Notes: generated by a model from the sequence alone, not told the origin. A DNA stretch of 64,000 bases from Macrostomum lignano (GCA_002269645.1 NIVC01003564.1:1-64000), one strand, 5' to 3'. Counted from the first letter of the stretch, positions 1 to 61,278 are shown. Translations and numbers: made by a program.

Positions 1-13
1 AATGGGAACTGAC

Positions 14-3000: not shown

Positions 3001-3252
3001 GAGGAACTCGACGATTAGAAAGTGACCACGGATTGCAGCAATTTCGGCAGCTTTGATGCAGCAGGCGTCTTTATTTGATTGGCCATTGATTACTGGTACG
3101 AGGAACTGGACATCTTGAAGGCGATCATTTGATGCAGCAGTTAGAGTAGCTTGGACGATCTCGCGCAAGGTGCCATTGGTTGCAGCACGTCGAGCAGTTG
3201 GCGTGATGTTGTCGGTGGTGAGGGGCTGATGGCGGCTTGGATTCTGGGCCAT
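14..3252 (-). pseudogene. ANK-repeat-cGLR gene copy A, exon 1 (25 PLIND-type 33-aa repeats plus canonical ANK C-terminal part); gene continues off the left edge; several small frameshifts
   Basis: ATG at 3252 (MAQNPSRHQ). ORFs 2737..3252 and 719..2746 are joined by 1-, 1- and 2-nt deletions at ~2770/2755/2740, with further 1-nt losses at ~800 and ~700. 14..700 is open by manual translation (...RFQCVLNACSRL...RATALILAAHAGHHEIIHKLILLGAS...RTALSRACQAGHVRAAK...LRLLNPTE). It ends at the same GA|GTCAGT donor (13) as copies B-D. The lesions could be assembly errors. Confidence 0.75.
700..3100 (-). repeat. Coding 99-bp (33-aa) ankyrin-like tandem array, copy A (25 motifs)
   Basis: PLIND anchor spacing 711 to 3082 = 2371 nt + 5 deleted nt = 24 x 99. 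Confidence 0.9.
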
Positions 3253-12475: not shown

Positions 12476-13131
12476 CTGTAGAGCGCAGTGAGCGGAGAGT
12501 GGCATTGCAGCGAGTGAACAAGATGGATTGGTTTGCAACTGCTTGAATGTGTTGGTTGAGTTCGTGTGTCAGTGCTACTACTGCAATCAGTGAATGAAGC
12601 AAAGTATTCGTTAAAATGCATGCAGGCGCACCGCTAAGGAGTTGATGATGGGCGGAGAAAGAGAAAAATTATATTTTATATTTTCTAACATAAACATAGG
12701 TGAAAAGGTTGGGGGGTTGGCGGAGATATATATTGAGTACATTGTGCGTACAGTGAAAATAGAGAAAATAACCTATGGATGAAATAGGCGGCTAGCCTAG
12801 GCAAACTCATTTTTTCGACACAAGTCATTGCTTAACCTTAAGAAGTCGGGAAGGTCGTTTTCGACCACTTACAACTCCCCAGCGCAGTCGGTTCAAAATA
12901 TCTGTGGCCAGCGCACAAATTCTCTACCCACCGTTCCAGTTGGCTATGGGTCGAACTCGACCAAAAATAGAAGTAAAGCAACAAACTTTGCAAAAATGGC
13001 TCGTATTAACAGTAACAACAATAACAAACAATCAAACATAGCGGGAAAGTTTCATTCAAATTTCAAAATCATTCAAAGCTTTCTAGCACCTTAGAAGATG
13101 ATAATGGTAGATTGCGTAGTAGGTATATATA

Positions 13132-13510
13132 TTAAGACGCAGAGGGGAGGCCCCTTGCGCGCACGCGTTCGCAGAACAGGCGGGAGGGGCAGGCAGCAGC
13201 AGCCTGAGGGGTCAGCTCAAGCGCCTGCAAGTCCGCGATGAGGCAGTTCATTAGGGTGGTAGTGCGAGCCTGGCCACGGCGCAATTGCTCGGTCGGCCGG
13301 TGCAGCATGGCCAGGGCCAGAGGGACGGGCGCGCCGCGACCCAGAGTCCATAGGCAGTGGCCCAGCAGCATCTGGCGGCGCCGGCGCAGTATGGCACTCA
13401 GGGGCGGAGTTCCGGCGCGGGCCATCAGAGCGTTGGACGGCAGGCGATCCGGATAGTGCACGCCCAGCGCGTAGCGCAGCAATGATCGACTTGTGCGTAG
13501 CGCACGAGTG
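13132..13510 (-). mobile_element. 5'-truncated RTE-like LINE 3' fragment inside intron 3 of copy B
   Basis: LLRYALGVHYPDRLPSNALMARAGTPPLSAILRRRRQMLLGHCL resembles the post-RT C-terminal region of RTE-clade ORF2. Absent from intron 3 of C and D. Confidence 0.65.
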
Positions 13511-14199
13511 TCTATGGCCATTATTTCAGCCCATTACCTACTACGCAACGTCATTGTCTATAATACACAGCCTGGCCATTATTTCAGCGTGCCGGAAGCG
13601 GTAATTATTTCAGGGTAAGAGTGTGCGTGCGTGCGACTGCGTAAAGAGGGCGGTGGTTGGGCCATAAACTATAAATAAAAAAGCTGTTGGGCCATAGACT
13701 ATAAATGAATAAGCTGATGATAGGCTTGAGCGGACGAAAAGTAGCTGAAATAATGGCCAGTTGAGTTTGTCATTACGCTAGGCTGTGTCTTCTGGACAAT
13801 GATTCTTTAATTATTGTGCCACGTGCCAAAGCAGTTCACAAGACGCAGTGATGGGACTTTCCGACTGGAATGGGAATGCAATGTTTGATCTGAAAGAAAG
13901 TGTCTATGGCCCGATTTCGACCCATCCGACTGAAACGGGGAGTGACAAATATCTTCTCTGAGAGGTGACAAACCTCTGAGGTGGTGAGGCAGTGCAATTT
14001 CTGGGACTTGAGTTGACTATATAGTTTTCAGAATTTTTTTAAAGCGAAATGAGTGCTGAAAGGAATTTCAGCCAGTTCTCAAACGCAGGTGGAACTTGTG
14101 AGCTCTGAAGTTCAGGTAAAGAATAAAAAATTGAGCAAAGTTGACGGTCGCTTGGATTAGGGATTGCGGCATTGTGATGATGAGCGGAGCGTCACTGAC

Positions 14200-14534
14200 C
14201 TGCTCCGACTGTCACCTGTGCGTGGCCCTCCGTGACCTGGAGCCGAGTGTCGTCGCTGCAGAAATCTTTTCTGTCACAGCCACCTTCCAGATGGAACACT
14301 TGCCCGGCAACCAGCACAGTCCAGTCAATGTCGGAGTCTGCAGCTGTCCTGCCGTTGACTTGCACCAGACTGTTGGCCCAGCCCTCTGCGTAGCTGCCGG
14401 TCATTTGCCTGAAATCCTGTGTGAGGTCTTGAACTACTTCTTTCAGCCAGTCAGCCAGTTCCTGCTGACACTTTGCTCTCTGCTGGGTGAATCCCGCATT
14501 GCTGAGCAATTGATGCAGCTCTTTGTCAGAGAGT
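14200..14534 (-). CDS. Exon 3 of copy B: nucleotidyltransferase core (GS...DID)
   Basis: LSDKELHQLLSNAGF...MTGSYAEGWANSLVQVNGRTAADSDIDWTVL. 335 nt, CCAG acceptor and GTCAGT donor. Confidence 0.85.
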
Positions 14535-15394
14535 CTGGAAGGATAGTGTGGTGGTTGGGAGAGGTGAGAGTGCATATTTGCAGAGTGGACCAAGGAGAGT
14601 GAGACTCACATTGAGCGGCTTTGAGCGGTTGTGTTGGTGTGCTGTTGTTTTCTGGAATGTGTGAATGAAAGCTAGGTGAGGAAGTGAAGTAATAGGAAGT
14701 GAAATGGCAATTAATGGGAACTGACTCGGTGGGATTCAGCAGGCGAAGCACCTGCCGCTGGTCGAATCTCTGTGCGAGTTGCGCACAGGTGAAGCCATGA
14801 TTGTCTCGATGGTTGGCATCGGCTCCTCTGTCTATCAGAGCCTTGGCTGCTCGCACGTGACCGGCTTCACACGCTCGTGACAGAGCAGTCCGACCCTGAC
14901 TGTCTTCAGCACACACTGACGCACCGAGATCGATGAGTTTCTCAATGAGCTCGTGATGACCTGCATCAGCTGCCAGCATGAGAGCAGTGGCTCCAGTGCT
15001 GTCTGGCAGATCGACAAGCTGTGTGCTGACTCGCTCATCATTGATCAGTGTGACAGCGAGAGCGACGTGTCTTTGAGAGATAGAGAGACGGAGCAGCTGT
15101 GTGATGCGAGCTGGCTGCATTCGAGAGAGGGTGTCGGTGAGAACAGAGTTCCTGCCTTCGATGGCCATTGCTGCAGTGAAGCTGAGGATGGTGCTGTATT
15201 GGAAGAGCCAGTCGGGCTCGAGGCCGAGGCATGCAACGACATCTTCAGCAACACGAGAGCAAGCTTTGAGTACGCATTGGAAGCGGAGATTTTCTCTCTG
15301 ATGGGAACTAGAGAGACACGAGATAAGGAACTGGGCGATTTGAAAGTGACCGTATTGTGTAGCAATTTCTGCAGCCTCGATGCAGAAGGCGTCT

Positions 15395-16510
15395 TTTTTT
15401 GATTGGTCATTGATAAGTGGTACGAGGAACTCGACGATTTGCAAGTGACCACGGAGTGCAGCCTTTTCGGCAGCCTTGATGCAGCAGGCGTCTTTATTTG
15501 ATTGGTCATAGATTAGTGGTACGAGGAACTCGACGGCTTGAAAGTGACCCATGAATGCAGCATTTTCTGCAGCCTTGATGCAGCAGGCGTCTTTATTTGA
15601 TTGGTCATTGATTAGTGGTACGAGGAACTCGACGATTTGCAAGTGACCATTCATTGCAGCCTTTTCGGCAGCCTTGATGCAGCAGGCGTCTTTATTTGAT
15701 TAGTCATTGATTAGTGGTACGAGGAACTCGACGATTTGAAAGTGACCATTCATTGCAGCCCCTTCGGCAACCTTGATGCAGCAGGCGTCTTTATTTGATT
15801 GGTCATAGATTAGTGGTACGAGGAACTCGACGATTTGCAAGTGACCCTTGATTGCAGCCCATTCGGCAGCCTTGATGCAGTAGGCGTCTTTATTTGATTG
15901 GTCATAGATTAGTGGTACGAGGAACTCGACGATTTGCAAGTGACCACGGATTGCAGCCCCTTCGGCAACCTCGATGCAGCAGGCGTTTTTATTTGATTGG
16001 TCATAGATTAGTGGTACGAGGAACTCGACGATTTGCAAGTGACCATTCATTGCAGCCCATTCGGCAGCCTTGATGCAGCAGGCGTCTTTATTTGATTGGT
16101 CATTGATTAGTGGTACGAGGAACTCGACGATTTGCAAGTGACCACGGATTGCAGCCCCTTCGGCAACCTTGATGCAGCAGGCGTCTTTATTTGATTGGTA
16201 ATTGATTAGTGGTACGAGGAACTCGACTATTTGCAAGTGACCATTCATTGCAGCCCATTCGGCAGCCTTGATGCAGCAGGCGTTTTTATTTGATTGGTAA
16301 TTGATTAGTGGTACGAGGAACTCGACTATTTGCAAGTGACCATTCATTGCAGCCCATTCGGCAGCCTTGATGCAGCAGGCGTTTTTATTTGATTGGTCAT
16401 TGATTAGTGGTACGAGGAACTCGACGATTTGAAAGTGACCACGGAGTGCAGCCTCTTCGGCAGCCAATGTGCAGCAGCAGTCTTTTTTTGATTGGTCATT
16501 GATTAGTGAT
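15395..16510 (-). repeat. Coding 99-bp ankyrin-like tandem array, copy B (12 motifs)
   Basis: Anchor spacing 15406 to 16495 = 1089 = 11 x 99. Confidence 0.9.
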
Positions 16511-16906
16511 ACGAAAAACTGGACGTCTTCAAAGCGATTATGAGATGCGGCACTTACAGTAGCTCGAACGATATCGTAGAAGTTGGCATGGGTTGCAGCA
16601 GTTGGCGTGATGTTGTCGGTGCTGACGGCCTGATGGCGGCTTTGATTTTGGTCCATAGTTCTGGTGAGAGGTGTTGATGTTATGAAGCGATGTGTAGAGG
16701 GAGGAAGTGAAGTGATGTAGATAATTGTAAATTTTACCATAAAGCACTACCTTAAGTAATTTTCTAATATAATTTAATCATATACTAATTTAACTTAATT
16801 TAAACTCCCAATCTGTTTTTGTATCTATCGAGTGTACAGTTGGACCTCATTTGCTTGAATGTCTAAAATACCGCTTGTTCAAGGTTGTGATTGAAGAGTT
16901 GCAAAC

Positions 16907-25452: not shown

Positions 25453-27059
25453 TCACTGCAGTCTCATCCGACTGAGCTTGGCGTGAGTCCAGCTGTCTCT
25501 CTGCTCCGCTGCAGTTTCCATGGCAACCAGGCGCCCCAAGTCGGCCCCGTCTCGCCGCAGCCTCGCCCTCGCCCACAGCCTCCGCTCCTCATCTTCCCTG
25601 CTGCGGTGAGCGCCGCTGTCGCTGCCGCTGCGGTTCGAAACTCGCCACCGCTTCTGCCTGACCCAGCCGATCTTCTCCTCGTCCTGCGTCTCCATGGCGA
25701 CGCGTCTCTCTTTCTCGATCATCTCCATCTGCTGCAGGCTGAGCTCCACGTGCTCGCGGCAGTCGCTGTAGTGAGCCAGAGTGAGCAGCTCCTCCAAGTC
25801 CGGGTCTCCAAGCAGCTGTTCAATCCAATGATCGAATGCGATTGCAGGTGCGCGATTGCGGAGCAGCTCAGCTTGGAGACTCCAGCTCAGGCAGCGGAAG
25901 TTCACGTACAGGTGGGAGGAGAGAGGCTGCGACAGTCTGGCTGTGAACAGAGTCTGCGTGAACTCGGGAAGGAATGGGAAGCGAGGCGGAGAGTCGCAGG
26001 GGAGGCAGAACCTCCACACCCAGTCTGAGTCTTCTGGCAGTTTTATGCCTCCCCAGCTCTTGCGAAAATCCTGTGGCTTCAACCCCGACTCAACCTGATG
26101 TCTCTGCAGCTCCATCGCGAGTCTCTCAGCCTCCTCAGATTCTCCAAACTTCAAATGCGCCATGGCGGTCATGCACAGGGCGGCGCACTTGCACCACTGC
26201 TGCTCATGCAGGAGACTGAGCTGCCTCATTAGTGTGTCTCTGTCGCTCGATTCCGACTGCAGCTCGCTCACACACTGGTGCAACACACTGTACACGTCTG
26301 CGAACTTGTGGTACATATCTGTATAGCCACATTCACTTCCTTCCCTGATCTCCGTGACAGCAGGCGGCGCTGTCAGAGGCAGCAGAGTGAACGGGTGAAA
26401 GTAGAACTTCTCTGACTGCAGAGGTGTCACGTGTGTTCTCAGCTGCTCGACCACTCCGCCGATATCGCTTCTCAGCTCATGAAGTCGGTCTCGAACCCTC
26501 GCATTCGTGTTGTCGAAGTCGCCGCCGATTCCAGCGTTCTTGAAGTAGAGCGGAGCGTCGGGCATGAAGAAGTGCGGCATGCACTCATCGGACGAGCTGC
26601 TCGAGTCGATAAAGCTCAGCATCATGTCGAGAGACTCCTTGAGCAGAGCGATCAGATTGGGGGGCGGCAAAGCCCCAGTACGCAAAATAGGCCTAGATGG
26701 GCTTCTATGCTTCACTAGCATTGCGAAGAGCAGAGTCTTTGCATGGTAGGTCTTGAGTCCATGTGTGTCCAGAGTGAGCGGCAAGTGTCTCTTGAAGATG
26801 AACTTGATGAGTGTGAACAGCTGGCCCTGGACTGTGCTCAGCCGTCTCATGATCCGTTTCTCTTGGAAGCTGAAGCTCACTCTGAGCTCGTTGGTCGAGC
26901 TCGGTCTGGTCGCCCGCACGAGGTGAACTTTATCCGAGTTATCAGGAAGCAGTTTTTTAATTCTGTCTTTACAGAAACTGCTGCAGCACTGGATCGCATG
27001 GCACGTGTCCTGTGCAGGCCGCACACCGCACGCCGTGGCTGTCACAGCAGGTTGGCTGC
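25453..27059 (-). CDS. Exon 4 of copy C: Mab-21 C-terminal lobe plus helical tail
   Basis: Open within ORF 25453..27348; acceptor at 27060 gives phase-1 G|GC continuity with exon 3. Confidence 0.88.
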
Positions 27060-30000
27060 CTGTAGAGCGCAGTGAGCGGAGAGTGGCAGTGTGGCGAGTG
27101 AACACGATGGGTTGGTTTGCAACTGCTTGAATGTGTTGGTTGAGTTCGTGTGTCAGTGCTACTACTGCAATCAGTGAATGAAGCAAAGTATTCGTTGAAA
27201 TGCATGCAGGCGCACCGCTATGGAGTTGATGATGGGCGGATAAAGAGAAAATTATTTTAAGGGGAAAGAGAAAGCAAGGTATAAAATAAACCGATAATTG
27301 ATTTTGGCTGGCGATAAAGAAAACGAAGTTAGGGCTGTCGCAGCCCATAATTCAGCTTTTATATTTTCTAACATAAACATAGGTGAAAAGGTTGGGGGGT
27401 TGGCGGAGATATATATTGAGTACATTGTGCGTACAGTGAAAATAGAGAAAATAACTTTTGGATGAAATAGGCGGCTAGCCTAGGCCAACTCATTTTTTCG
27501 ACACAAGGCATTGCTTAATAATTGTTTCATAACCTCTGAGGTGGTGAGGCAGGGCAATTGCTGGGACTTGAGTTGACTGCGAAAAATCTTTATTCAAAGC
27601 AAAATGAATGCTAAAAGGTATTTCAGCCAGGTCTCAAACATAGGTTGAACTTGTGAGCTCTGGAGTTGAGCTATCGAATAAAAAATTCAGCAAAGTTGAC
27701 GGGGGCTTGGATTGGGGATTGCGGCATTGTGATGATGAGCGCAGCGTCACTGACCTGCTCCGACTGCCACTTGTGCGTGGCCCTCCTTGACCTTGAGCGG
27801 AGTGTCGTAGCCGCAGGAACCTTTTCTGTCGCAGCCACCTTCCAGATGGAACATTTGCCCAGCAACCAGCACAGTCCAGTCAATGTCGGAGTCTGCAGCT
27901 GTCCTGCCGTTGACTTGCACCAGACTGTTGGCCCAGCCTTCTGCGTAGCTGCCGGTCATTTGCCTGTCATCCTGTGTGAGGACTCGAGCGACTTCTTGCA
28001 GCCAGTCAGCCAGGTCTTGCTGACACTCTGCTCTCTGCTGGGTGAATCCCGCATCGCTGAGCAGTTGATGCAGCTTTTTGTCAGAGAGTCTGGAAGGATA
28101 GCGTGGTGGGTGGGAGAGGTTAGAGCGCATATTTGCAGAGTAGGAGGCCAAGGAGAGTGAGACTCACATTGAGCGGCTTTGAGCGGTTGTGTGGGTCTGC
28201 TTTCGCTTTCTGGAATGTGTGAATGAAAGCGAGGTGAGGAAGTGAAGTGATAGGAAGTGGAATGGCAATTAATGGGAACTGACTCGGTGGGATTCAGCAG
28301 GCGAAGCACCTGCTGCTGGTGGAATCTCTGTGCGAGTTGCGCACAGGTGAGGCCGTGATTGTCTCGATGGTTGGCATCGGCTCCTCTGTCTATCAGAGCC
28401 TTGGCTGCTCGCACGTGACCGGCTTCACACGCTCGTGACAGAGCAGTCCGACCCTGACTGTCTTCAGCGAGCACTGACGCACCGAGATCGATGAGTTTTC
28501 GAATGAGCTCGTGATGACCTGCATCAGCTGCCAGCATGAGAGCAGTGGCTCCAGTGCTGTCTGGCAGATCGACAAGCTGTGTGCTGACTCGCTCATCATT
28601 GATCAGCGTAACAGCAAGAGCGATGTGTCTTTGAGTGATAGAGAGACGAAGCAGCGGTGTGATGTGAGCTGGCTGCATTCGATAGAGGGTGTCTGTGAGA
28701 ACAGAGTTCCTGCCTTCGATGGCCATTGCTGCAGTGAAGCTGAGGATGGTGCTGTATTGGAGGAGCCAGTCGGGCTCGAGGCCGAGGGAGGCAACGGCAG
28801 GCTCATCAAGACGAGAGCAAGCTTTGAGTACGCATTGGAAGCGGAGATTTTCTCTCTGATGGGGACTAGAGAGACACGAGATAAGGAACTGGGCGATTTG
28901 AAAGTTACTATTGATTGCAGCATTTGCGGCAGCATTGATGCAGCAGGCGTCTTTTTTTGATTGGTCATTGATTAGAGGTACGAGGAACTCGACGATTTTA
29001 AAGTGACCTTGGAATGCAGCCTTTTCGGCAGCGTAGATGCAGCAGGCGTCTTTTTTTGATTGGTCATTGATTAGTGGTACGAGGAACTCGACGATTTGAA
29101 AGTGACCATATATTGCAGCCTTTTTGGCAGCCTTGATGCAGCAGGCGTCGTTATTTGATTGGTCATTGATTAGTGGTACGAGGAACTCGACGGCTTTAAA
29201 GTGACCCTTGATTGCAGCCCATTTGGCAGCCTTGATGCAGCAAGCGTCTTTTTTTGATTCGTCATTGATTAGTGGTACGAGGAACTCGACGATTTGAAAG
29301 TGACCCTTGATTGCAGCATTTTCGGCAGCCTTGATGCAGCAAGCGTCTTTATTTGATTGGTCATTGATTAGTGGTACGAGGAACTCGACGGCTTGAAAGA
29401 GACCAAGGATTGCAGCCCATTCGGCAGCCTTGATGCAGCAAGCGTCTTTATTTGATTGATCATTGATTAGTGGTACGAGTAGCTTGACGATTTGAAAGTG
29501 ACCATTCATTGCAGCCTTTTCGGCAGCCTTGATGCAGCAAGCGTCTTTATTTGATTGGTCATTGATTAGTGGTACGAGGAACTCGACGATTTTAAAGTGA
29601 CCCTTGATTGCAGCATTTTCGGCAGCCTTGATGCAGCAGGCGTCTTTATTTGACTGGTCATTGATTAGTGGTACGAGGAACTCGACGATTTGAAAGTGAC
29701 CATTCATTGCAGCCTTTTTGGCAGCCTTGATGCAGCAAGCGTCTTTATTTGATTGATCATTGATTAGTGGTACGAGGAACTCGACGGCTTTAAAGTGACC
29801 CTTGATTGCAGCCCATTTGGCAGCCTTGATGCAGCAAGCGTCTTTTTTTGATTCGTCATTGATTAGTGGTACGAGGAACTCGACGATTTGAAAGTGACCC
29901 TTGATTGCAGCATTTTCGGCAGCCTTGATGCAGCAAGCGTCTTTATTTGATTGGTCATTGATTAGTGGTACGAGGAACTCGACGATTTTAAAGTGACCCT

Positions 30001-33000
30001 TGATTGCAGCATTTTCGGCAGCCTTGATGCAGCAGGCGTCTTTATTTGACTGGTCATTGATTAGTGGTACGAGGAACTCGACGATTTGAAAGTGACCATT
30101 CATTGCAGCCTTTTCGGCAGCCTTGATGCAGCAAGCGTCTTTATTTGATTGGTCATTGATTAGTGGTACGAGGAACTCGACGGCTTTAAAGTGACCTTGG
30201 AATGCAGCCTTTTCGGCAGCGTAGATGCAGCAGGCGTCTTTTTTTGATTGGTCATTGATTAGTGGTACGAGGAACTCGACGGCTTGAAAGTGACCAAGGA
30301 TTGCAGCATTTTCTGCAGCCTTGATGCAGCAAGCGTCTTTATTTGATTGATCATTGATTAGTGGTACGAGGAACTCGACGATTTTAAAGTGACCTTGGAA
30401 TGCAGCCTTTTCGGCAGCGTAGATGCAGCAGGCGTCTTTTTTTGATTGGTCATTGATTAGTGGTACGAGGAACTCGACGATTTGAAAGTGACCCTTGATT
30501 GCAGCATTTTTGGCAGCCCTGATGCAGCAGGCGTCGTTATTTGATTGGTCATTGATTAGTGGTACGAGGAACTCGACGGCTTGAAAGTGACCAAGGATTG
30601 CAGCATTTTCTGCAGCCTTGATGCAGCAAGCGTCTTTATTTGATTGATCATTGATTAGTGGTACGAGGAACTCGACGATTTGAAAGTGACCATTCATTGC
30701 AGCCTTTTTGGCAGCCCTGATGCAGCAGGCGTCGTTATTTGATTGGTCATTGATTAGTGGTACGAGGAACTCGACGGCTTTAAAGTGACCCTTGATTGCA
30801 GCATTTTCGGCAGCCTTGATGCAGCAAGCGTCTTTATTTGATTGGTCATTGATTAGTGGTACGAGGAACTCGACGATTTTAAAGTGACCCTTGATTGCAG
30901 CATTTTCGGCAGCCTTGATGCAGCAGGCGTCTTTATTTGACTGGTCATTGATTAGTGGTACGAGGAACTCGACGATTTGAAAGTGACCATTCATTGCAGC
31001 CTTTTTGGCAGCCTTGATGCAGCAAGGGTCTTTATTTGATTGGTCATTGATTAGTGGTACGAGGAACTCGACGGCTTTAAAGTGACCCTTGATTGCAGCC
31101 CATTTGGCAGCCTTGATGCAGCAAGCGTCTTTTTTTGATTCGTCATTGATTAGTGGTACGAGGAACTCGACGATTTGAAAGTGACCCTCCATTGCAGCAT
31201 TTTCGGCAGCCTTGATGCAGCAAGCGTCTTTATTTGATTGGTCATTGATTAGTGGTACGAGGAACTCGACGGCTTGAAAGAGACCAAGGATTGCAGCCCA
31301 TTCGGCAGCCTTGATGCAGCAAGCGTCTTTATTTGATTGATCATTGATTAGTGGTACGAGTAGCTTGACGATTTGAAAGTGACCATTCATTGCAGCCTTT
31401 TCGGCAGCCTTGATGCAGCAAGCGTCTTTATTTGACTGGTCATTGATTAGTTGTACGAGGAACTCGACGATTTTAAAGTGACCATTCATTGCAGCCTTTT
31501 CGGCAGCCTTGATGCAGCAGGCGTCTATATTTGATTGGTCATTGATTAGTGGTACGAGGAACTCGACGATTTGAAAGTGACCATATATTGCAGCCTTTTT
31601 AGCAGGCTTGATGCAGCAGGCGTCTTTATTTGATTGGTCATTGATTAGTGGTACGAGGAACTCGACGATTTTAAAGTGACCCTTGATTGCAGCATTTTCG
31701 GCAGCCTTGATGCAGCAGGCGTCTTTATTTGACTGGTCATTGATTAGTGGTACGAGGAACTCGACGATTTGAAAGTGACCATTCATTGCAGCCTTTTTGG
31801 CAGCCTTGATGCAGCAAGGGTCTTTATTTGATTGGTCATTGATTAGTGGTACGAGGAACTCGACGGCTTTAAAGTGACCCTTGATTGCAGCCCATTTGGC
31901 AGCCTTGATGCAGCAAGCGTCTTTTTTGATTCGTCATTGATTAGTGGTACGAGGAACTCGACGATTTGAAAGTGACCCTCCATTGCAGCATTTTCGGCAG
32001 CCTTGATGCAGCAAGCGTCTTTATTTGATTGGTCATTGATTAGTGGTACGAGGAACTCGACGGCTTGAAAGAGACCAAGGATTGCAGCCCATTCGGCAGC
32101 CTTGATGCAGCAAGCGTCTTTATTTGATTGATCATTGATTAGTGGTACGAGTAGCTTGACGATTTGAAAGTGACCATTCATTGCAGCCTTTTCGGCAGCC
32201 TTGATGCAGCAAGCGTCTTTATTTGACTGGTCATTGATTAGTTGTACGAGGAACTCGACGATTTTAAAGTGACCATTCATTGCAGCCTTTTCGGCAGCCT
32301 TGATGCAGCAGGCGTCTATATTTGATTGGTCATTGATTAGTGGTACGAGGAACTCGACGATTTGAAAGTGACCATATATTGCAGCCTTTTTAGCAGGCTT
32401 GATGCAGCAGGCGTCTTTATTTGACTGGTCATTAATTAGTTGTACGAGGAACTCGACGATTTTAAAGTGACCCTTGATTGCAGCATTTTCGGCAGCCTTG
32501 ATGCAGCAAGCGTCTTTATTTGATTGGTCATTGATTAGTGGTACGAGGAACTCGACGATTTTAAAGTGACCCTTGATTGCAGCATTTTCGGCAGCCTTGA
32601 TGCAGCAGGCGTCTTTATAGGACTGGTCATTGATTAGTGGTACGAGGAACTCGATGATTTTAAAGTGACCCTTGATTGCAGCATTTTCGGCAGCCTTGAT
32701 GCAGCAGGCGTCTTTATTTGACTGGTCATTGATTAGTGGTACGAGGAACTCGACAATTTTAAAGTGACCCTTGATTGCAGCATTTTTGGAAGCATTGATG
32801 CAGAATGCGTCTTTTTTTGGTTGAACATTGATTAGTGGTACGAGGAACTCGACGGCTTGAAAGTGACCAAGGATTGCAGCACTTTCGGCAGCCTTGATGC
32901 AGCAGGCGTCTTTATTTGATTGATCATTGATTAGTGGTACGAGGAACTCGACGACTTTAAAGTGACCATTCATTGCAGCCTTTTCGGCAGCCTTGATGCA

Positions 33001-36000
33001 GCAGGCGTCTTTATTTGATTGGTCATTGATTAGTAGTACGAGGAACTCGACGATTTGAAAGTGACCATTTTTTGCAGCCTTTTTAGCAGGCTTGATGTAG
33101 CAGGCGTCTTTATTTGACTGGTCATTGATTAGTTGTACGAGGAACTCGACGATTTTAAAGTGACCCTTGATTGCAGCATTTTCGGCAGCCTTGATGCAGC
33201 AGGCGTCTTTTTTTGATTGGTCATTGATAAGTGGTACGAGGAACTCGACGGCTTGAAAGTGACCAAGGATTGCAGCATTTTCTGCAGCCTTGATGCAGCA
33301 AGCGTCTTTATTTGATTGGTCATTGATTAGTGGTACGAGGAACTGGACGATTTGAAAGTGACCATATTTTGCAGCCTTTTCAGCAGCGTTGGTGTAGCAA
33401 GCCTCTTTATTTGATTGGTAATTGATTAGTGGTAGGAGGAACTCGACGATTTTAAAGTGACCATATTTTGCAGCATTTTCGGCAGCCTTGATGCAGCAAG
33501 CGTCTTTATTTGATTGGTCATTGATTAGTGGTACGAGGAACTCGACGATTTTAAAGTGACCCTTGATTGCAGCATTTTCGGCAGCCTTGATGCAGCAGGC
33601 GTCTTTATTTGACTGGTCATTGATTAGTGGTACGAGGAACTCGATGATTTTAAAGTGACCCTTGATTGCAGCATTTTCGGCAGCCTTGATGCAGCAGGCG
33701 TCTTTATTTGACTGGTCATTGATTAGTGGTACGAGGAACTCGACAATTTTAAAGTGACCCTTGATTGCAGCATTTTTGGAAGCATTGATACAGAATGCGT
33801 CTTTTTTTGGTTGATCATTGATTAGTGGTACGAGGAACTCGACGGCTTGAAAGTGACCAAGGATTGCAGCACTTTCGGCAGCCTTGATGCAGCAGGCGTC
33901 TTTATTTGATTGATCATTGATTAGTGGTACGAGGAACTCGACGACTTTAAAGTGACCATTCATTGCAGCCTTTTCGGCAGCCTTGATGCAGCAGGCGTCT
34001 TTATTTGATTGGTCATTGATTAGTAGTACGAGGAACTCGACGATTTGAAAGTGACCATTTTTTGCAGCCTTTTTAGCAGGCTTGATGTAGCAGGCGTCTT
34101 TATTTGACTGGTCATTGATTAGTTGTACGAGGAACTCGACGATTTTAAAGTGACCCTTGATTGCAGCATTTTCGGCAGCCTTGATGGAGCAGGCGTCTTT
34201 TTTTGATTGGTCATTGATAAGTGGTACGAGGAACTCGACGGCTTGAAAGTGACCAAGGATTGCAGCATTTTCTGCAGCCTTGATGCAGCAAGCGTCTTTA
34301 TTTGATTGGTCATTGATTAGTGGTACGAGGAACTGGACGATTTGAAAGTGACCATATTTTGCAGCCTTTTCAGCAGCGTTGGTGTAGCAAGCCTCTTTAT
34401 TTGATTGGTAATTGATTAGTGGTAGGAGGAACTCGACGATTTTAAAGTGACCATATTTTGCAGCATTTTCGGCAGCCTTGATGCAGCAAGCGTCTTTATT
34501 TGATTGGTCATTGATTAGTGGTACGAGGAACTCGACGATTTTAAAGTGACCCTTGATTGCAGCATTTTCGGCAGCCTTGATGCAGCAGGCGTCTTTATGT
34601 GACTGGTCATTGATTAGTGGTACGAGGAACTCGATGATTTTAAAGTGACCCTTGATTGCAGCATTTTCGGCAGCCTTGATGCAGCAGGCGTCTTTATTTG
34701 ACTGGTCATTGATTAGTGGTACGAGGAACTCGACAATTTTAAAGTGACCCTTGATTGCAGCATTTTTGGAAGCATTGATACAGAATGCGTCTTTTTTTGG
34801 TTGATCATTGATTAGTGGTACGAGGAACTCGACGGCTTGAAAGTGACCAAGGATTGCAGCACTTTCGGCAGCCTTGATGCAGCAGGCGTCTTTATTTGAT
34901 TGATCATTGATTAGTGGTACGAGGAACTCGACGACTTTAAAGTGACCATTCATTGCAGCCTTTTCGGCAGCCTTGATGCAGCAGGCGTCTTTATTTGATT
35001 GGTCATTGATTAGTAGTACGAGGAACTCGACGATTTGAAAGTGACCATTTTTTGCAGCCTTTTTAGCAGGCTTGATGTAGCAGGCGTCTTTATTTGACTG
35101 GTCATTGATTAGTTGTACGAGGAACTCGACGATTTTAAAGTGACCCTTGATTGCAGCATTTTCGGCAGCCTTGATGCAGCAGGCGTCTTTTTTTGATTGG
35201 TCATTGATAAGTGGTACGAGGAACTCGACGGCTTGAAAGTGACCAAGGATTGCAGCATTTTCTGCAGCCTTGATGCAGCAAGCGTCTTTATTTGATTGGT
35301 CATTGATTAGTGGTACGAGGAACTGGACGATTTGAAAGTGACCATATTTTGCAGCCTTTTCAGCAGCGTTGGTGTAGCAAGCCTCTTTATTTGATTGGTA
35401 ATTGATTAGTGGTAGGAGGAACTCGACGATTTTAAAGTGACCATATTTTGCAGCATTTTCGGCAGCCTTGATGCAGTAGGCGTCTTTATTTAATTGGTCA
35501 TTGATTAGTGGTACGAGGAACTCGAGGATTTCAAAATGACCATTCATTGCAGCAATTTCAGCAGCCCAGATGCAGCAGGCGTATTTTTTTGATTGGTCTT
35601 TGATTAGTGGCACGAGGAACTCGAAGATTTGGAAGTGACCATATTTTGCAGCCTTTTTAGCAGACTTGATGCAGCAGGCGTCTTTATTTGACTGGTCATT
35701 GATTAGTGGTACGAGGAACTCGACGATTTGAAAGTGACCCTTGATTGCAGCATTTTCGGCAGCCTTGATGCAGCAAGCGTCTTTTTTTGATTGGTCATTG
35801 ATTAGTGGTACGAAAAACTCTACAATTTGAAAGTGACCATGAATTGCAGCCCTTTTTGCAGCCCAGATAAAGAAGGCATCTTTATCTGATAGGTCATTGA
35901 TTAGTGGTACGAGAAGCTGGACGTCTTCAAAGCGATTATGAGATGCCGCACTTAGAGTAGCTCGGACGATCTCGTAGAAGTTGCCATGGGTTGCAGCAGT

Positions 36001-36054
36001 TGGCGTGTTGTTCTCGGTGGTGACAGGCTGATGGCGGCTTTGATTTTGGTCCAT
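25453..36054 (-). CDS. ANK-repeat-cGLR (Mab-21/cGAS-like nucleotidyltransferase) gene copy C, 71 repeats, ~3251 aa if one homopolymer indel is corrected
   Basis: Exons 36054..28284, 28209..28168, 28089..27755, 27059..25453. The only break is A6 instead of A7 at ~31922-31927; the sister repeat at ~31130 has A7. NTase motif GSYAEG...DSDIDW; Mab-21 motifs ELRVSFSFQEK, LIKFIF, TYHAKTLL, CMPHFFMP. Confidence 0.85.
27755..28089 (-). CDS. Exon 3 of copy C: nucleotidyltransferase core
   Basis: Same 335-nt exon, motifs and splice sites as in B and D. Confidence 0.88.
28950..35905 (-). repeat. Coding 99-bp ankyrin-like tandem array, copy C (71 motifs) with higher-order repeats
   Basis: Anchor spacing 28964 to 35893 = 6929 + 1 = 70 x 99. 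Consensus VPLINDQSNKDACCIKAAExAAxxGHFQIVEFL aligns without gaps to the 33-aa ankyrin consensus (AAxxGH.EIV..LL). Confidence 0.92.
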
Positions 36055-46728: not shown

Positions 46729-48358
46729 TTAATAAATCTGAGTAAGGAAGTCCTCAGGTCCCTGCAGTCTCATTCGAATAAGCTTGGCGTGAATCCAGCT
46801 GTCTCTCTGCTCTGCTGCTGTTTCCATGGCAACGAGGCGACCCAAGTCGGCCCCGTCTCGCCGCAGCCTCGCCCTAGCCCACAGCCTCCGCTCCTCATCT
46901 TCCATGCTGCGGTGAGCGCCGCTGTCGCTGCCGCTGCGGTTCGAAACTCGCCACCGCTTCTGCCTGACCCAGCCGATCTTCTCCTCGTCCTGCGTCTCCA
47001 TGGCGACGCGTCTCTCTTTCTCGATCATCTCCATCTGCTGCAGGCTGAGCTCCACGTGCTCGCGGCAGTCGCTGTAGTGAGCCAGAGTGAGCAGCTCCTC
47101 CAAGTCCGGGTCTCCAAGCAGCTGTTCAATCCAATGATCGAATGCGATTGCAGGTGCGCGATTGCGGAGCAGCTCAGCTTGGAGACTCCAGCTCAGGCAG
47201 CGGAAGTTCACGTACAGGTGGGAGGAGAGAGGCTGCGACAGTCTGGCTGTGAACAGAGTCTGCGTGAACTCGGGAAGGAATGGGAAGCGAGGCGGAGAGT
47301 CGCAGGGGAGGCAGAACCTCCACGCCCAGTCTGAGTATTCTGGCAGTTTTATATCACTCAAACTCCATTTGCGACTCTCATCTCGAATATCCTGCGGCTT
47401 CAACCCTGACTCAAGCTGATGTCTCTGCAGCTCCATCGCGAGTCTCTCAGCCTCCTCAGATTCTCCGAACTTCAAATGCGTCATGGCGTCATGCACAGGG
47501 CGGCGCACTTGCACCACTGCTGCTCATGCAGGAGACTGAGCTGCCTCATCCGGGTGTTTCTGTCGCTCGATTCCGACTGCAGCTCGCTCACACACTCGTG
47601 CACCACACTGTACACATCTGCGAACTTGTAGTACTTTTTGGGACATTCACTTCTTTCCCGGATCTTCGTGACAGCAGGCGGCGCTGTTAAAGGCAGCAGA
47701 GTGAACGGGTGAAAGTAGAACTTTTCTGACTGCAGAGGTCTCACGTGTGTTCTCAGCTGCTCGACCACTCTGTCAATGTCGCTTCTCAGCTCACGAAGTC
47801 GGTCTCGAACCCTCGACTTCGTGTTGTCGAAGTCGCCGCCGATTCCAGCGTTCTTGAAGTAGAGCGGAGCGTCGGGCATGAAGAAGTGCGGCATGCACTC
47901 ATTGGGCGACCTCCTTGACCTCATAAATTTAAGCATCATGTCGAGCGACTCCTTGAGCAGAGCGATCAGATTGTGGGGCTGCCAAGCCTCAGTTTCAGGA
48001 CTTTTGCCATACCTCTCCAGCATTGCGAAGAGCAGAGTCTTTGCATGGTAGGTCTTGAGTCCAGGTGTGTCCAGAGTGAGCGGCAAGTGTCTCTTGAAGA
48101 TGAACTTGATGAGTGTGAACAGCTGGCCCTGGACTGTGCTCAGCCGTCTCATGATGTCTTTCTCTTGGAAGCTGAAGCTCACTCTGAGCTCGTTGGTCGA
48201 GCTCGGTCTGGTCGCGCGAACGAGGTGAACACAATTATCGTTTTTAATTAGTTTTCTAACTCTGCCTACACAGAAGCTGCTGCAGCAGTGAATCGCATGG
48301 CACGTGTCCTGTGCAGGCCGCACACCGCACGCCGTGGCTGTCACAGCAGGTTGGCTGC
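46729..48358 (-). CDS. Exon 4 of copy D: Mab-21 C-terminal lobe plus helical tail (one 1-nt indel)
   Basis: ORFs 47481..48575 and 46729..47517; acceptor at 48359. Confidence 0.8.
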
Positions 48359-50792
48359 CTGTAGAGCGCAGTGAGCGGAGAGTGGCAGTGTGGCGAGTGA
48401 ACAAGATGGATTGGTTTGCAACTGCTTGAATGTGTTGGTTGAGTTCGTGTGTCAGTGCTACTACTGCAATCAGTGAATGAAGCAAAGTATTCGTTGAAAT
48501 GCATGCAGGCGCACCGCTATGGAGTTGATGATGGGCGGAGAAAGAGAAAATTATTTTAGGGCAAAGAGAAAGCAAGGCATTGCTTCATAATTGTTTAATA
48601 ACCTCTGAGGTGGTGAGGCAGTGCAATTGCTGGGACTTTAGTTGAGTTATTGCTTGCCAGAAATTTTATTCAAAGCGAAATGAGTCCTGAAAGGAATGTC
48701 AGCCAGGTCTCAAACTCAGGTTGAACTTGTGAGCTCTGAAGTTCAGGTATCGAATAAAAAATTCAGCAAAGTTGACGGGGGCTTGGATTGGGGATTGCGG
48801 CATTGTGATGATGAGCGCAGCGTCACTGACCTGCTCCGACTGCCACTTGTGCGTGGCCCTCCTTGACCTTGAGCGGAGTGTCGTAGCCGCAGGAACCTTT
48901 TCTGTCGCAGCCACCTTCCAGATGGAACATTTGCCCAGCAACCAGCACAGTCCAGTCAATGTCGGAGTCTGCAGCTGTCCTGCCGTTGACTTGCACCAGA
49001 CTGTTTGCCCAGCCCTCTGCGTAGCTGCCGGTCATTCGCCTGTGATCCTGTGTGAGGACTCGAGCGACTTCTTGTAGCCAGTCAGCCAGGTTTTGCTGAC
49101 ACTTTGCTCTCTGCTGGGTGAATCCTGCATCGCTGAGCAGTTGATGCAGCTCTTTGTCAGAGAGTCTGGAAGGATAGCGTGGTGGGTGGGAGAGGTGAGA
49201 GTGCATATTTGCAGAGTGGGCCAAGGAGAATGAGACTCACATTGAGCGGCTTTGAGCGGTTGTGTGGGTGTGCTGTTGTTTTCTGGAATGTGTGAATGAA
49301 AGCGAGGTGAGGAATTGAAGTGATAGGAAGTGGAATGGCAATTAATGGGAACTGACTCGGTGGGATTCAGCAGGCGGAGCACCTGCCGCTGGTCGAATCT
49401 TTGTGCGAGTTGCGCACAGGTGAGGCCGTGATTGTCTCGATGGTTGGCATCCGCTCCTGCATCCATCAGAGCCTTGGCTGCTCGCACGTGACCGGCTTCG
49501 CACGCTCGTGACAGAGCAGTCCGACCCTGACTGTCTTCAGCACGCACTGACGCACCGAGATCGATGAGTTTCTCAATGAGCTCGTGATGACCTGCATCAG
49601 CTGCCAGCATGAGAGCAGTGGCTCCAGTGCTGTCTGGCAGATCGACAAGCTGTGTGCTGACTCGCTCATGATTGATCAGCGTGACAGCAAGAGCGACGTG
49701 TCTTTGAGAGATAGAGAGACGGAGCAGCTGTGTGATGCGAGCTGGCTGCATTCGAGAGAGGGTGTCGGTGAGAACAGAGTTCCTGCCTTCGATGGCCATT
49801 GCTGCAGTGAACCTGAGGATGGTGGTGGATTGGAAGAGCCATTTGGGCTCGAGGCCGAGGGAGGCAACTGCATCTTCGCGCAGACGAGAGCAAGCTTTGA
49901 GTACGCATTGGAAGCGGAGATTTTCTCTCTGATGGGAACTAGAGAGACACGAGATAAGGAACTGGACGATTTGAAAGTGACCATTGTCTGCAGCTTTTTC
50001 TGCAGCCTCGATGCAGAAGGCGTCTCTGTTTGATTGGTCATTGATTAGTGGTACGAGGAACTCGACGGCTTGAAAGTGACCCATGAATGCAGCATTTTCT
50101 GCAGCCTTGATGCAGCAGGCGTCTTTATTGGATTGGTCATTAATTAGTTGTACGAGGAACTGGACGATTTGAAAGTAACCACGGATTGCAGCCTCTTCGG
50201 CAGCCCTGATGCAGCAGGCGTCTTTATTTGATTGGTCATTGATTAGCGGTACGAGAAACTGGACGATTTGAAAATGACCATTCATTGCAGCTTTTTCGGC
50301 AGCCTTGATGCAGCAGGCTTCTTTATTTGATTGGTCATTGATTAGTGGTACGAGGAACTCGACGGCTTGAAAGTGACCCATGAATGCAGCATTTTCTGCA
50401 GCCTTGATGCAGCAGGCGTCTTTATTGGATTGGTCATTAATTAGTTGTACGAGGAACTGGACGATTTGAAAGTAACCACGGATTGCAGCCTCTTCGGCAG
50501 CCCTGATGCAGCAGGCGTCTTTATTTGATTGGTCATTGATTAGCGGTACGAGAAACTGGACGATTTGAAAATGATCATTCATTGCAGCTTTTTCGGCAGC
50601 CTTGATGCAGCAGGCTTCTTTATTTGATTGGTCATTGATTTGTGATACGAAAAACTGGACGTCATCAAAGCGATTTTGAGATGCGGCACGTAGAGTAGCT
50701 CGGACGATGTCGCAGAAGTTTGCATGGGTTGCAGCAGTCGGCGTGATGTTGTCGGTGCTGAAGGCCTGATGGCGGCTTTGATTTTGGCCCAT
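46729..50792 (-). CDS. ANK-repeat-cGLR gene copy D, 7 repeats, ~1147 aa if one 1-nt indel is corrected
   Basis: Exons 50792..49357, 49282..49241, 49165..48831, 48358..46729. A 1-nt loss at ~47487 (catggcgtc vs catggcggtc in B/C) splits ORFs 47481..48575 and 46729..47517. The TGA stop of B/C is GGA here, adding GPEDFLTQIY. Confidence 0.8.
48831..49165 (-). CDS. Exon 3 of copy D: nucleotidyltransferase core
   Basis: Same 335-nt exon, motifs and splice sites. Confidence 0.88.
50025..50645 (-). repeat. Coding 99-bp ankyrin-like tandem array, copy D (7 motifs; a 3-unit block duplicated)
   Basis: Anchor spacing 50037 to 50631 = 594 = 6 x 99. The MN/IR/FM triplet occurs twice. Confidence 0.9.

Positions 50793-61237: not shown

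Positions 61238-61278
<41 letters not shown>

Follow-up and report, generated by a model that had tools for sequence, protein, structure and literature searches.

A long array of tandem 33-residue units at the N-terminus of a Macrostomum lignano gene raises the question of whether the differences between its units fall on a binding surface, as in designed ankyrin repeat proteins (DARPins), and whether selection has placed them there. The array (positions 28950-35905) lies in a 64 000-nucleotide stretch of DNA (GCA_002269645.1 NIVC01003564.1:1-64000; hereafter the window) holding four tandem minus-strand paralogues, genes A to D (Table 1). In each, an N-terminal array of 99-bp (33-aa) units is followed by two canonical ankyrin repeats and then by a Mab-21/cGAS-like nucleotidyltransferase (NTase). 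The arrays contain 7 (A, units counted over 50063-50717), 71 (B), 12 (C, 15432-16581) and 25 (D, 737-3168) units; the ∼115 units counted in an earlier, sequence-only reading therefore correspond to the whole window, and not to array B, on which that reading focused.

Table 1. Features of the ankyrin–NTase paralogues within the window
Feature	Position	Strand	Basis or remarks
Gene B	25453..36054	-	N-terminus, cap, 71-unit ankyrin-type array, canonical ankyrin pair, Mab-21/cGAS-like NTase, C-terminal extension
Gene B start codon, N-terminal segment (MDQNQSRHQ...) and divergent N-cap unit FYEIVRATLSAASHNRFEDVQLLVPLINDLSDK	35881..36054	-	translated ORF
Array B, 70 regular 99-bp units, consensus DACCIKAAENAAIKGHFQIVEFLVPLINDQSNK	28952..35880	-	TRF, anchor spacing, alignment; hypervariable codons 6, 10, 13, 14
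Gene B degenerate last unit (…AAINSNFQIAQFLISCLSS…), helical linker and two canonical ankyrin repeats, to end of exon 1 (…LLNPTE)	28284..28951	-	Pfam Ank/Ank_2 matches; donor site located
Gene B mini-exon 2	28168-28209	-	P0034 splice pattern
Gene B exon 3, NTase core with MTGS-X20-DIDW	27755-28089	-	P0034 splice pattern and translation
Gene B exon 4, remaining NTase core (…RPAQDTCHAI…), Mab-21_C helix bundle, ∼300-aa C-terminal extension	25453..27059	-	translation
Gene B A6 run (A7 in sister block)	31922..31927	-	1-bp deletion
Three copies of 10-unit (990-bp) higher-order block	32515..35484	-	unit-type string, lag-10 identity
Two copies of 8-unit higher-order block, the first with the frameshift	30833..32415	-	unit-type string
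Gene A	46729..50792	-	paralogue; 7-unit array at 50025-50717
Gene C	11078..16740	-	paralogue; 12-unit array at 15394-16581
Gene D	1..3252	-	25-unit array at 699-3168; 3′ part beyond window edge

In array B, TRF found 71.0 copies of a 99-bp period (28884-35913), and the spacing of an anchor motif was exactly 99 nt 69 times and 98 nt once. Since gene A is essentially the annotated P0034 (UniProt A0A1I8GUK9; 97-99.5% identity), the exon pattern of this protein was borrowed for gene B, in which all the P0034 splice sites are present. Spliced in this way, gene B has four exons and reads open for 1377 aa and, past one missing base, for a further 1873 aa; exon 4 keeps a single frame throughout (tblastn), and the paralogous stretches match Pfam Mab-21_C. 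The missing base, in the A6 run, divides the array ORF into 27956-31786 and 31843-36054; either the frameshift arose very recently or the homopolymer was misassembled. The N-cap unit of gene B recurs in arrays A, C and D. The frame disruptions of B, C and D lie inside the arrays, while the single frame switch of gene A (at about 47487) lies downstream of its array; P0034, a protein derived from another assembly, lacks this switch, so that some of the 1-bp indels may be errors. Gene C, which has an in-frame TAA inside the unit that begins at 15789, together with a deletion and a frame change in its C-terminal part and an insertion of ∼1.5 kb in intron 3, is likely a pseudogene, and the array of gene D contains one 4-bp and one 1-bp deletion. 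Frames are thus disrupted in three or four of the four copies, with some of the disruptions perhaps being assembly errors. Since C and D, at least, have the appearance of pseudogenes, past selection may be all that the variation described below records.

Per-codon entropy was computed over the 110 regular units of all four arrays. Variation was uneven, being concentrated at unit positions 14 (2.81 bits), 10 (2.34) and 13 (2.17), with a second tier at positions 18 (1.26), 6 (1.24) and 32 (1.01); positions 19 and 9 reached 0.97 and 0.81 bits, and all others 0.63 or lower. The sequence-only reading had described the residue before the AA pair and the CI-x site as variable, and the residues it listed agree with the counts at position 10 (K in 40 units, N in 37, W in 11, E in 8, I in 5, S and G in 3 each, and R, M and T once each) and position 6 (K in 86, Y in 9, N in 6, R in 4, W in 3, and L and E once each). 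The 18 states it named for the di-residue 13/14 all exist across the four arrays (17 among the regular units, and DN in the terminal unit of A), but only nine of them occur within 28950-35905 (IK, MN, IL, KY, KN, IY, FQ, ME and IH), or ten states if IN in the terminal unit is included. That these differences often involve multi-nucleotide codon changes was put too strongly: the common states are 2-3 nt apart, but the codon sets of positions 6, 10, 13 and 14 are each joined by single-nucleotide steps, the number of steps in the minimum-spanning tree equalling that of its edges. These four codons account for 41% of the nucleotide diversity on 12% of the sites, with π reaching 0.37 and 0.31 at their first and second positions and 0.093 at scaffold third positions. 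Units are less alike in amino acid sequence (81% identity) than in DNA (89.6%), and amino acid diversity is focused on positions 6, 10, 13 and 14, more weakly on 9 and 32. The framework, said to be nearly invariant even at silent sites, does use the majority codon in 95.6% of cases, and the 24-mer quoted as an example is exact in 72 of the 115 units (42 of them in the range of array B); given the π value at third positions, and silent variants common at unit positions 2, 8, 29 and 30, silent sites are better described as uniform than as invariant. In seven other paralogous arrays elsewhere in the genome, mean entropy followed the order 13, 14, 10, 6, 9, although most of these sister arrays were far less diverse at 13/14, where they mostly have RN.

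Codons 6, 10, 13 and 14 carried 44% of the inferred nonsynonymous changes, versus 13% expected by sites (binomial P = 5e-27). Compared with the global dS, their ω was 2.7 (tree-based counts, Poisson P = 2e-16; P ≤ 1e-3 for each codon), with bounds of 1.9-5.5, depending on the tree, relative to the array-wide synonymous rate. When their own few silent sites were used as the reference, however, ω fell to 1.29, which was not significant; diversifying selection at these codons is suggested by the array-wide comparison, but not by the local one. Analysis of distinct units gave the same codon pattern as the full set. Scaffold ω was 0.44-0.59, from which we infer purifying selection on the scaffold.

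Judged by sequence, the units are true ankyrin repeats. The array alone scored 90.4 bits against Pfam Ank_2 (cut-off 27.3) and 88-105 bits against Ank_4 (cut-off 22.7), and its exact 99-bp period corresponds to the 33-residue period of the Ankyrin repeat (Pfam clan Ank); the TPLH motif is absent from the units, K-A-A-E standing in its place. A single-sequence AlphaFold2 model of the array (pLDDT 94.7) showed units in which a turn joins an 18-residue helix to a 10-residue one, a loop of 3 residues follows and strands are lacking; the beta-hairpin/finger loop was sought in this model and none was found, a provisional result given the single-sequence input. The best 50 PDB matches of the model in Foldseek were all DARPins, ankyrin-1/B or FEM1C (TM 0.4-0.67, the best 0.66-0.67; E down to 2e-7). 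On the predicted 18-residue helix, positions 32, 6, 10, 13 and 14 point towards the same face, to within ±52 degrees, and the helical moment of the entropy peaks at 100 degrees, a peak reached by 120 of 10 000 shuffles. The model and the helix geometry together suggest that each unit has a long inner helix (30 to 14), which a GH turn connects to a short outer one, and that the variable residues probably line one side of the long helix as an unbroken stripe; their surface exposure is a deduction from the secondary structure, the helical periodicity and the register shared with DARPins. As the model has no beta-hairpin, the predicted surface would be a helix stripe rather than a DARPin paratope.

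The units share the register of DARPins (reportedly described by Binz and colleagues in 2003; PDB 6mol, 2qyj and others). Both have the 33-aa ankyrin period and the …AAxxGH…IVE.L… framework, and in a gapless alignment (6mol_A, E = 6e-39) the variable di-residue falls on the DARPin AAxxGH pair, i.e. library positions 13/14; DARPin TPLH is replaced here by KAAE, and GADVNA by LINDQS. The positions randomised in DARPins (2, 3, 5, 13, 14 and 33), however, coincide only in part with those that vary here: the beta-turn positions 2, 3, 5 and 33 are conserved (0.35, 0.51, 0.23 and 0.38 bits), while the hot positions 6 and 10 correspond to T6 and L10 of the DARPin framework. Variation is thus limited to two of the six randomised positions, and a natural DARPin code would be putative.

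Array B also bears the marks of recent growth. Its 990-bp blocks, bordered by unique unit types, are not identical but show 4-6 nt differences over their length (99.4-99.6% identity); recent block duplication is clear, and array length changes as blocks of several units are duplicated. The window holds >20 other minisatellite arrays, and neutral slippage or unequal exchange may account for the growth to 71 units. The concerted homogenisation invoked earlier for the scaffold is only weakly apparent: scaffold distance is 0.057 within arrays versus 0.068 between them. Some scaffold variants do follow the array, L17 (TTG) occurring in 8 of 11 C units and the silent variants GCT2/CAG30 only in B.

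The C-terminal part of these proteins belongs to a family of which 32 Mab-21 homologues were found, nearly all in M. lignano. In genes A, B and P0034, Pfam detected only Ank families and Mab-21_C (30 bits, cut-off 24.1). The NTase core had no match in Pfam, nor in PDB sequence or profile searches, in which only the helix bundle aligned, to cGLR1, cGAS and MAB21L1 (E = 0.02-0.3). Among the best 50 Foldseek matches listed for the NTase model, whose mean pLDDT was only 56, all were MAB21L1, cGAS, Sp-cGLR1 or CD-NTase (E from 2e-3, TM 0.3-0.5). The active-site motif of gene B reads MTGS-X20-DIDW-X57-QDT, to be compared with the definition for cGAS-like receptors (cGLRs), h[QT]GS X8-20 [DE]h[DE]h X50-90 h[DE]h (Li et al. 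2023, PMC9980059); the third element has the D but polar flanks. An identical motif is carried by the paralogue P0001 (PAA68676.1; 86% identical in this part), which was cloned as cGLR no. 93 (Table S3) in a 140-enzyme screen that also included PAA93208.1 (Li et al. 2023, PMC9980059). The M. lignano constructs in that screen were trimmed to the NTase domain, ANK being treated only as a fused 'ligand-interacting domain', and the related NTase-only M. lignano constructs are not named among its 15 active enzymes. An N-terminal ANK region joined to a cGLR-type NTase is shared with the fusions reported there (e.g. in Stylophora pistillata), for which near-identical arrays, hypervariable positions and differences of 7-71 units are not described (PMC9980059). 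Other members of the family carry caspase or kinase domains, which would give it an immune or cell-death flavour.

Long natural ankyrin solenoids include those of ankyrin-R/B/G (24 repeats) and NOMPC (29), and such superhelices bind extended partners along their inner groove. An extended ankyrin superhelix is a feature in common, Ankyrin-1 and AnkB being among the fold matches, but their repeats are divergent and ancient, whereas the 71 units here have 90% DNA identity, and array B, if translated as one protein, would be far longer. With TAL effectors the likeness is formal only (a coupled hypervariable pair): both have long arrays of near-identical 33-35-aa units differing mainly at an adjacent residue pair, but fold and family are unrelated, the units here being ANK by Pfam, and two further positions vary, one and two helical turns away. 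The closest analogue is found in the internally conserved repeats of fungal NOD-like receptors (NLRs), whose ANK, TPR or WD repeats are highly conserved internally (Paoletti/Saupe; Dyrka et al. 2014, PMC4986451), with a threshold of ≥85% inter-repeat identity over ≥100 aa. Both systems have near-identical tandem repeats, differences in repeat number and block shuffling, and an array joined to a signalling/effector domain of a large, fast-evolving family. In the fungal proteins a few positively selected positions map to the predicted binding face (PMC4986451); codons 6, 10, 13 and 14 here would be the candidate counterparts. The mean inter-unit identity here is just below the fungal threshold, although many pairs and whole 10-unit blocks exceed 99%. 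The differences are that the host is an animal, that the repeat numbers compared here (7, 12, 25, 71) are those of paralogues, the fungal criterion being polymorphism between alleles, and that the partner is a Mab-21/cGAS-like NTase (caspase or kinase in some paralogues); NACHT/NB-ARC, the central domain of fungal NLRs, was not detected by Pfam in genes A, B and P0034.

On balance we lean, with modest confidence, towards gene B being a member of a tandemly duplicated, lineage-specific ankyrin–Mab-21 family of the cGAS-like receptor type, in which array diversity represents a selected, putative ligand-contact surface. The locus might instead be a decaying gene cluster with minisatellite-like coding relics in pseudogenes, the hot codons being the least constrained surface positions, now neutral, and the remaining pattern inherited constraint. 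The stop in C, the 4-bp deletion in D and the 1-bp deletions in B, D and A would fit such decay, as would the non-significant own-site ω, the fairly high scaffold ω and very recent block duplications amid so many minisatellites. Neutrality, however, cannot yield nonsynonymous rates 2-5 times the array-wide synonymous rate; moreover, annotated paralogues whose reading frames are open have their hot spots at these positions too, a single missing A is all that interrupts the 3250 codons of gene B, which keeps all its splice sites, and the absence of gene A's frame switch from P0034 suggests that part of the 1-bp damage may be error. We therefore regard decay as unlikely.

Diversity might also reflect age, and not ongoing positive selection, if the di-residue types were ancient and held by purifying or balancing selection while gene conversion erased scaffold divergence. 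Positions 13 and 14 are indeed tightly coupled (1.8 bits of mutual information), only 17 of 88 possible pairs being observed; the MN type is common to all four arrays, and the array-specific scaffold variants of C and B extend across different unit types. This explanation nonetheless seems distinctly unlikely: of 42 distinct signatures among the 110 units one is common to all four arrays and most are private to a single array, and the within-array scaffold distance is near both the between-array value and the divergence of the flanking paralogues, so strong homogenisation is not evident. Very unlikely, in our judgement, is that the 71-unit length, the higher-order blocks and the frameshifts were produced by long-read assembly, the true array being shorter or different. 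The near-identity of the three 990-bp blocks would agree with this, the frameshifts of B and A and one of D lie in homopolymer or dinucleotide runs, and annotated proteins with an array of this consensus reach at most 7 units; but the blocks are non-identical with unique borders, and the codon pattern recurs in all four arrays whatever their length and copy number, as the distinct units confirm.

Under the selected-surface reading, the helix-face stripe would be a ligand-contact surface kept diverse by selection, so that each paralogue would present its own extended surface. The array might then act as a sensing or partner-binding module controlling the attached nucleotidyltransferase, a role that would be that of the internally conserved ANK/TPR/WD repeats in fungal NLRs. 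The array thus looks like a recognition surface in rapid diversification, on what may be an innate-immune sensor.

The array of gene B, one of four tandem paralogues (A, B, C and D) in which an ankyrin-type array is followed by a Mab-21/cGAS-like nucleotidyltransferase (NTase), is made of 99-bp tandem units whose anchor motif recurs at a spacing of exactly 99 nt 69 times and of 98 nt once. The four arrays of the window together contain 115 units (see table), and the translated 33-residue unit reads approximately DACCIKAAENAAIKGHFQIVEFLVPLINDQSNK. A sequence-only reading had assigned ~115 units, and 18 states of the di-residue at unit positions 13/14 (AA-xx-GH), to the stretch 28950-35905; since the units are spread over four arrays, both the unit count and the list of states cover the whole window rather than that stretch alone. 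All 18 states are indeed present in the window (17 in regular units, and DN in the last unit of array A), but array B has only nine of them, plus IN in its last unit.

Positions of the arrays and of other features in the window
Feature	Position	Strand	Description
Array A	50063-50717	(-)	7 units
Array B	28884-35913	(-)	71.0 copies of a 99-bp unit (TRF)
Array C	15432-16581	(-)	12 units
Array D	737-3168	(-)	25 units
Recurrent minisatellites downstream of the ANK-Mab21 copies	7583-10670, 19249-25123, 43482-46431		17-bp AATAGGAGTCCNTGTTT, 23-bp ATGAGTCAGTGGCGCCAATACAG, 37-bp unit, 15-bp GGAGAGGGAGAGGCG
Insertion in intron 3 of gene C	~12690-13986		~1.5 kb, absent from genes A and B
Insertion common to genes B and C	~27280-27470		~190 bp, missing in gene A
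Relic upstream of gene B	37799-37962		short, in two frames; resembles the segment just after the array (residues 256-310 of paralogue P0034)
15-bp-based satellite ACCATCCCTACAGTC	4222-5659		TRF periods 45, 60 and 105 bp; GC skew -0.6; yields long spurious ORFs on both strands
1015-codon ORF	59413-62460	(-)	63-66% GC; low complexity (RS/SR repeats, poly-Q, poly-A, poly-G)

When the aligned units were analysed codon by codon, the variation proved to be focused, as the earlier reading had observed, and both entropy and substitution counts bear this out. Among the 110 regular units, entropy was highest at positions 14 (2.81 bits), 10 (2.34 bits) and 13 (2.17 bits), followed by positions 18 (1.26), 6 (1.24), 32 (1.01), 19 (0.97) and 9 (0.81), with the rest at 0.63 bits or less. 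Positions 13 and 14 were tightly coupled, sharing 1.8 bits of mutual information. The 'hot' codons 6, 10, 13 and 14 make up 12% of the sites and 41% of the nucleotide diversity; their π values were 0.37 at first and 0.31 at second codon positions, while in the scaffold (the other codons) π was 0.093 at third positions and 0.041 at first and second positions. The framework had been described as nearly invariant even at silent sites. These are better called uniform than invariant: a framework 24-mer was exact in 72 of the 115 units, and the majority codon was used at 95.6% of scaffold codons.

To count substitutions, parsimony was applied to a tree of 80 distinct units. The hot codons received 89.5 of 204.5 nonsynonymous changes (binomial P = 5e-27), and their ω relative to the array-wide synonymous rate was 2.7 (Poisson P = 2e-16), each of the four being significant by itself (P ≤ 1e-3); ω for the remaining 29 codons was 0.53-0.59. 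The hot-codon value depended on the tree, rising from 1.9 (array B, all-sites tree) to 3.9 (array B, scaffold-only tree) and 5.5 (all arrays, scaffold-only tree), the lowest being conservative because the hot codons themselves shape the all-sites tree. A minimum-spanning-tree lower bound on the number of changes, itself conservative, gave a hot-codon ω of 1.3 (own dS) to 2.2 (global dS). With the hot codons' own silent sites, which are few, as the reference, ω was 1.29, which is not significant; a site model with constant dS would thus call these codons, while a FEL-type test probably would not. Amino acid identity between units (81%) lies below DNA identity (89.6%), which points in the same direction as the elevated nonsynonymous change. 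The di-residue had also been said to vary by multi-nucleotide codon changes. This holds between its common states, but the codon sets at all four hot sites are linked by single-base steps, so that an unusual mutation process need not be invoked.

The same focus was recovered in four, and then in seven, other arrays of annotated M. lignano paralogues whose unit consensus differs: mean within-array entropy ranked positions 13, 14, 10 and 6 highest, followed by 32 or 9. This comparison covered arrays other than those of P0051 and P0141, more divergent paralogues in which the unit HMM recovers few units. Most of the arrays were less diverse at positions 13/14 than those of the window, often carrying 'RN' there; the subfamily in the window is the extreme case.

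As to where the hot residues lie, the array alone exceeded the cut-offs of the Pfam families Ank_2 and Ank_4 and aligned without gaps to designed ankyrin repeat proteins (DARPins; 6mol_A, E = 6e-39). The alignment places the di-residue, as the sequence-only reading had proposed, on the 'AAxxGH' pair, at which DARPin sequences themselves differ. The DARPin libraries of Binz and colleagues, from 2003, were reportedly randomised at positions 2, 3, 5 and 33 as well as at 13/14. In the M. lignano units these four additional positions are conserved (0.23-0.51 bits), and the hot spots 6 and 10 correspond to the DARPin framework residues T6 and L10; the likeness to DARPins is therefore limited to the framework and positions 13/14. 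In a confident AlphaFold2 model of nine units, built from a single sequence (pLDDT 94.7), a helix of 18 residues starts at position 30 of each unit and ends at position 14 of the following one; the GH turn comes next, then a second helix of 10 residues (positions 17-26) and a loop of 3 residues, and none of the nine units has a β-hairpin. The closest structural matches of the model were DARPins and ankyrins (TM up to 0.66). Along the long helix, entropy followed an α-helical period, with a moment peak at 100 degrees that was reached by 120 of 10000 shuffles. Positions 32, 6, 10, 13 and 14 point the same way to within ±52 degrees, so that the hot residues form one stripe on one face, and the invariant A/C/I residues (4, 5, 8, 11 and 12) lie on the opposite one. 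Secondary structure, helical moment and the register with DARPins underlie this placement; judging from the homologous DARPin positions 13/14, the stripe would line the inner groove.

A Cys-Cys pair at unit positions 3-4 (…D.CC[IK]…; for example 35871-35876, in the first regular unit of array B) is near-invariant throughout the 110 units and likewise in the paralogous arrays, and gives gene B ~140 cysteines. From helical geometry, C3 would belong to the variable face and C4 to the buried one. A role as a ladder, or in metal binding, redox chemistry or acylation, is conceivable.

The earlier interpretation also included concerted homogenisation of the scaffold. In the strict sense the evidence for it is weak: scaffold distance was 0.057 within and 0.068 between arrays, a difference reached in 8 of 500 permutations. 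Some variants of the scaffold are confined to one array though spread over unit types, such as L17 (8 of 11 units of array C) and the silent variants GCT2 and CAG30 (array B only). The 42 signatures at positions 6/9-10/13-14 are mostly private to one array, one being common to all four. Array B contains only 43 distinct DNA units, with a 10-unit block present three times (its copies differing at 4-6 positions per 990 nt) and an 8-unit block present in two copies, and array A consists of two copies of a 3-unit block; these repeated multi-unit blocks are clearly the result of recent unequal exchange or block duplication. On a larger scale, the whole gene is duplicated in tandem together with its downstream minisatellites; since each ANK-Mab21 copy is followed by the same set of minisatellites, the gene-plus-satellite block is a tandem segmental duplication. 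Minisatellite copy numbers vary between blocks (the 17-mer, for instance, has 38 versus 64 copies).

Downstream of each array lies coding sequence for two canonical ankyrin repeats and the Mab-21 domain, exceeding the cut-offs of Pfam Ank families and of Mab-21_C. Joining the ankyrin ORF directly to the Mab-21 ORF through a GTGAGT...CCAG intron of 75 nt keeps the frame and so runs into a stop. The junction was solved by P0034 (UniProt A0A1I8GUK9, 1139 aa), an annotated paralogue 97-99.5% identical to gene A, in which exon 1 ends in ...LLNPTE and is followed by a 42-nt mini-exon between two introns, an NTase-core exon and a large last exon; the GT-AG sites of this pattern are also present in genes A, B and C. 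Spliced in this way, gene B has an open frame of 1377 codons before and 1873 codons after a single missing A, located in a run at 31922-31927 that has seven As in the sister copy of the 8-unit block. In gene A the frame is broken near 47487, where one C of 'ACCGCC' is missing by comparison with genes B and C and with P0034, which comes from another assembly; some 1-bp indels of the window therefore differ between assemblies or haplotypes. Genes A and B are thus each one homopolymer-type base short of an open gene, which may reflect a real change or an assembly error. Gene C, which has a TAA stop in frame, a deletion and a change of frame, and gene D, with a 4-bp and a 1-bp deletion, look like pseudogenes from their sequence. 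The N-terminus of gene A (50784-50792) and of several paralogues reads MGQNQSRHQ, with an N-myristoylation-like Gly2; those of B (36046-36054) and C read MDQNQS and that of D (3244-3252) MAQNPS, so the N-terminal glycine is not conserved. A bacterial or phage origin of the window was ruled out by the GT-AG introns, the minisatellites and the flatworm homologues. No Pfam family matched any of the remaining large ORFs, including the low-complexity ORF at 59413-62460, which could be the gene of an SR-related protein.

The NTase of gene B carries MTGS-X20-DIDW and, 57 residues further, Q-D-T, close to the active-site motif of cGAS-like receptors (cGLRs; Li et al. 2023, PMC9980059). PDB searches, whether started from one sequence or from a profile of eight members, aligned the C-terminal helix bundle but not the NTase core, and the AlphaFold2 model of the NTase part had low confidence. 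Two M. lignano proteins, PAA68676.1 (paralogue P0001, 86% identical to gene B over the NTase part) and PAA93208.1, are among the 140 enzymes cloned by Li et al. (2023, PMC9980059; Table S3), as NTase-only constructs without the ankyrin array; since Macrostomum is absent from the main text, which describes 15 active enzymes, neither is one of these. The same study notes ANK-cGLR fusions in a coral, and reports that most flatworms hold only Mab21-like proteins; cGAS-like receptors are reported to be largely lost in flatworms.

Of the 32 relatives returned by a protein search, nearly all belong to Macrostomum lignano, a free-living flatworm. When 1.84 billion representative proteins were scanned in full with the Mab-21 part of gene B, only 90 clusters (50% identity) were found, 74 of them at E ≤ 1e-10; the 10 clusters sampled for species were all from M. 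lignano, which indicates a private expansion of at least 74 clusters in this species. Two M. lignano paralogues encoded outside the window carry a further domain besides the ankyrin-type array and Mab-21: a C-terminal caspase in P0141 (PAA93319.1, 2111 aa; Peptidase_C14, E = 2.8e-27) and a protein kinase in P0049 (1185 aa; E = 7.6e-49). Each combination may be a real fusion or may stem from merged gene models. A literature search found no publication on the ankyrin-Mab-21 family of Macrostomum.

The closest parallel is provided by the internally conserved repeats of fungal NLRs, in which repeat number is polymorphic, repeats are shuffled and positions of the concave face are under positive selection; among metazoan ANK/TPR/WD proteins only 0.8% have repeats of this kind (Dyrka et al. 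2014, PMC4986451). The M. lignano arrays appear to share this evolutionary regime, but the genes lack a NOD domain, belong to an animal and couple the array to a cGAS-like enzyme; the likeness to TALE repeats is only formal. The kind of system is known, while the novelty lies in its setting and in the helix-stripe geometry. The hypervariable stripe, together with the caspase and kinase domains of sister proteins, is consistent with a family of putative sensors in which the array would be the recognition module. A much bolder proposal, to which we give little credence, is that the arrays are a modular, fast re-programmable recognition system of animal cGAS-like receptors: the stripe of every unit (32/6/10/13/14) would bind one element of a ligand that is extended or periodic, for instance a peptide, a glycan or a nucleic acid, and unequal exchange of multi-unit blocks would write new specificities, making a metazoan, NLR-independent counterpart of the fungal repeat receptors, or a TALE-like code, with a nucleotide second-messenger, caspase or kinase output.

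The cGAS-like receptors are a major pattern-recognition family of animals, and for most of them we know of no ligand. In the private expansion of this one flatworm, such an enzyme is joined to arrays of near-identical ankyrin units, whose copy numbers differ greatly and whose variation is focused on a hypervariable stripe. The arrays also form a natural collection of variants on the question at which ankyrin positions change is tolerated or specificity encoded once a helix replaces the β-turn, and a simple experimental handle exists in gene A, with its seven units only, since RNAi is effective in M. lignano. Should the stripe be a ligand surface, the family would show, in an animal, the strategy of fungal NLRs, in which a conserved scaffold is combined with hypervariable contacts and repeat shuffling, and would hint at protein or other non-nucleic-acid ligands of cGLRs.
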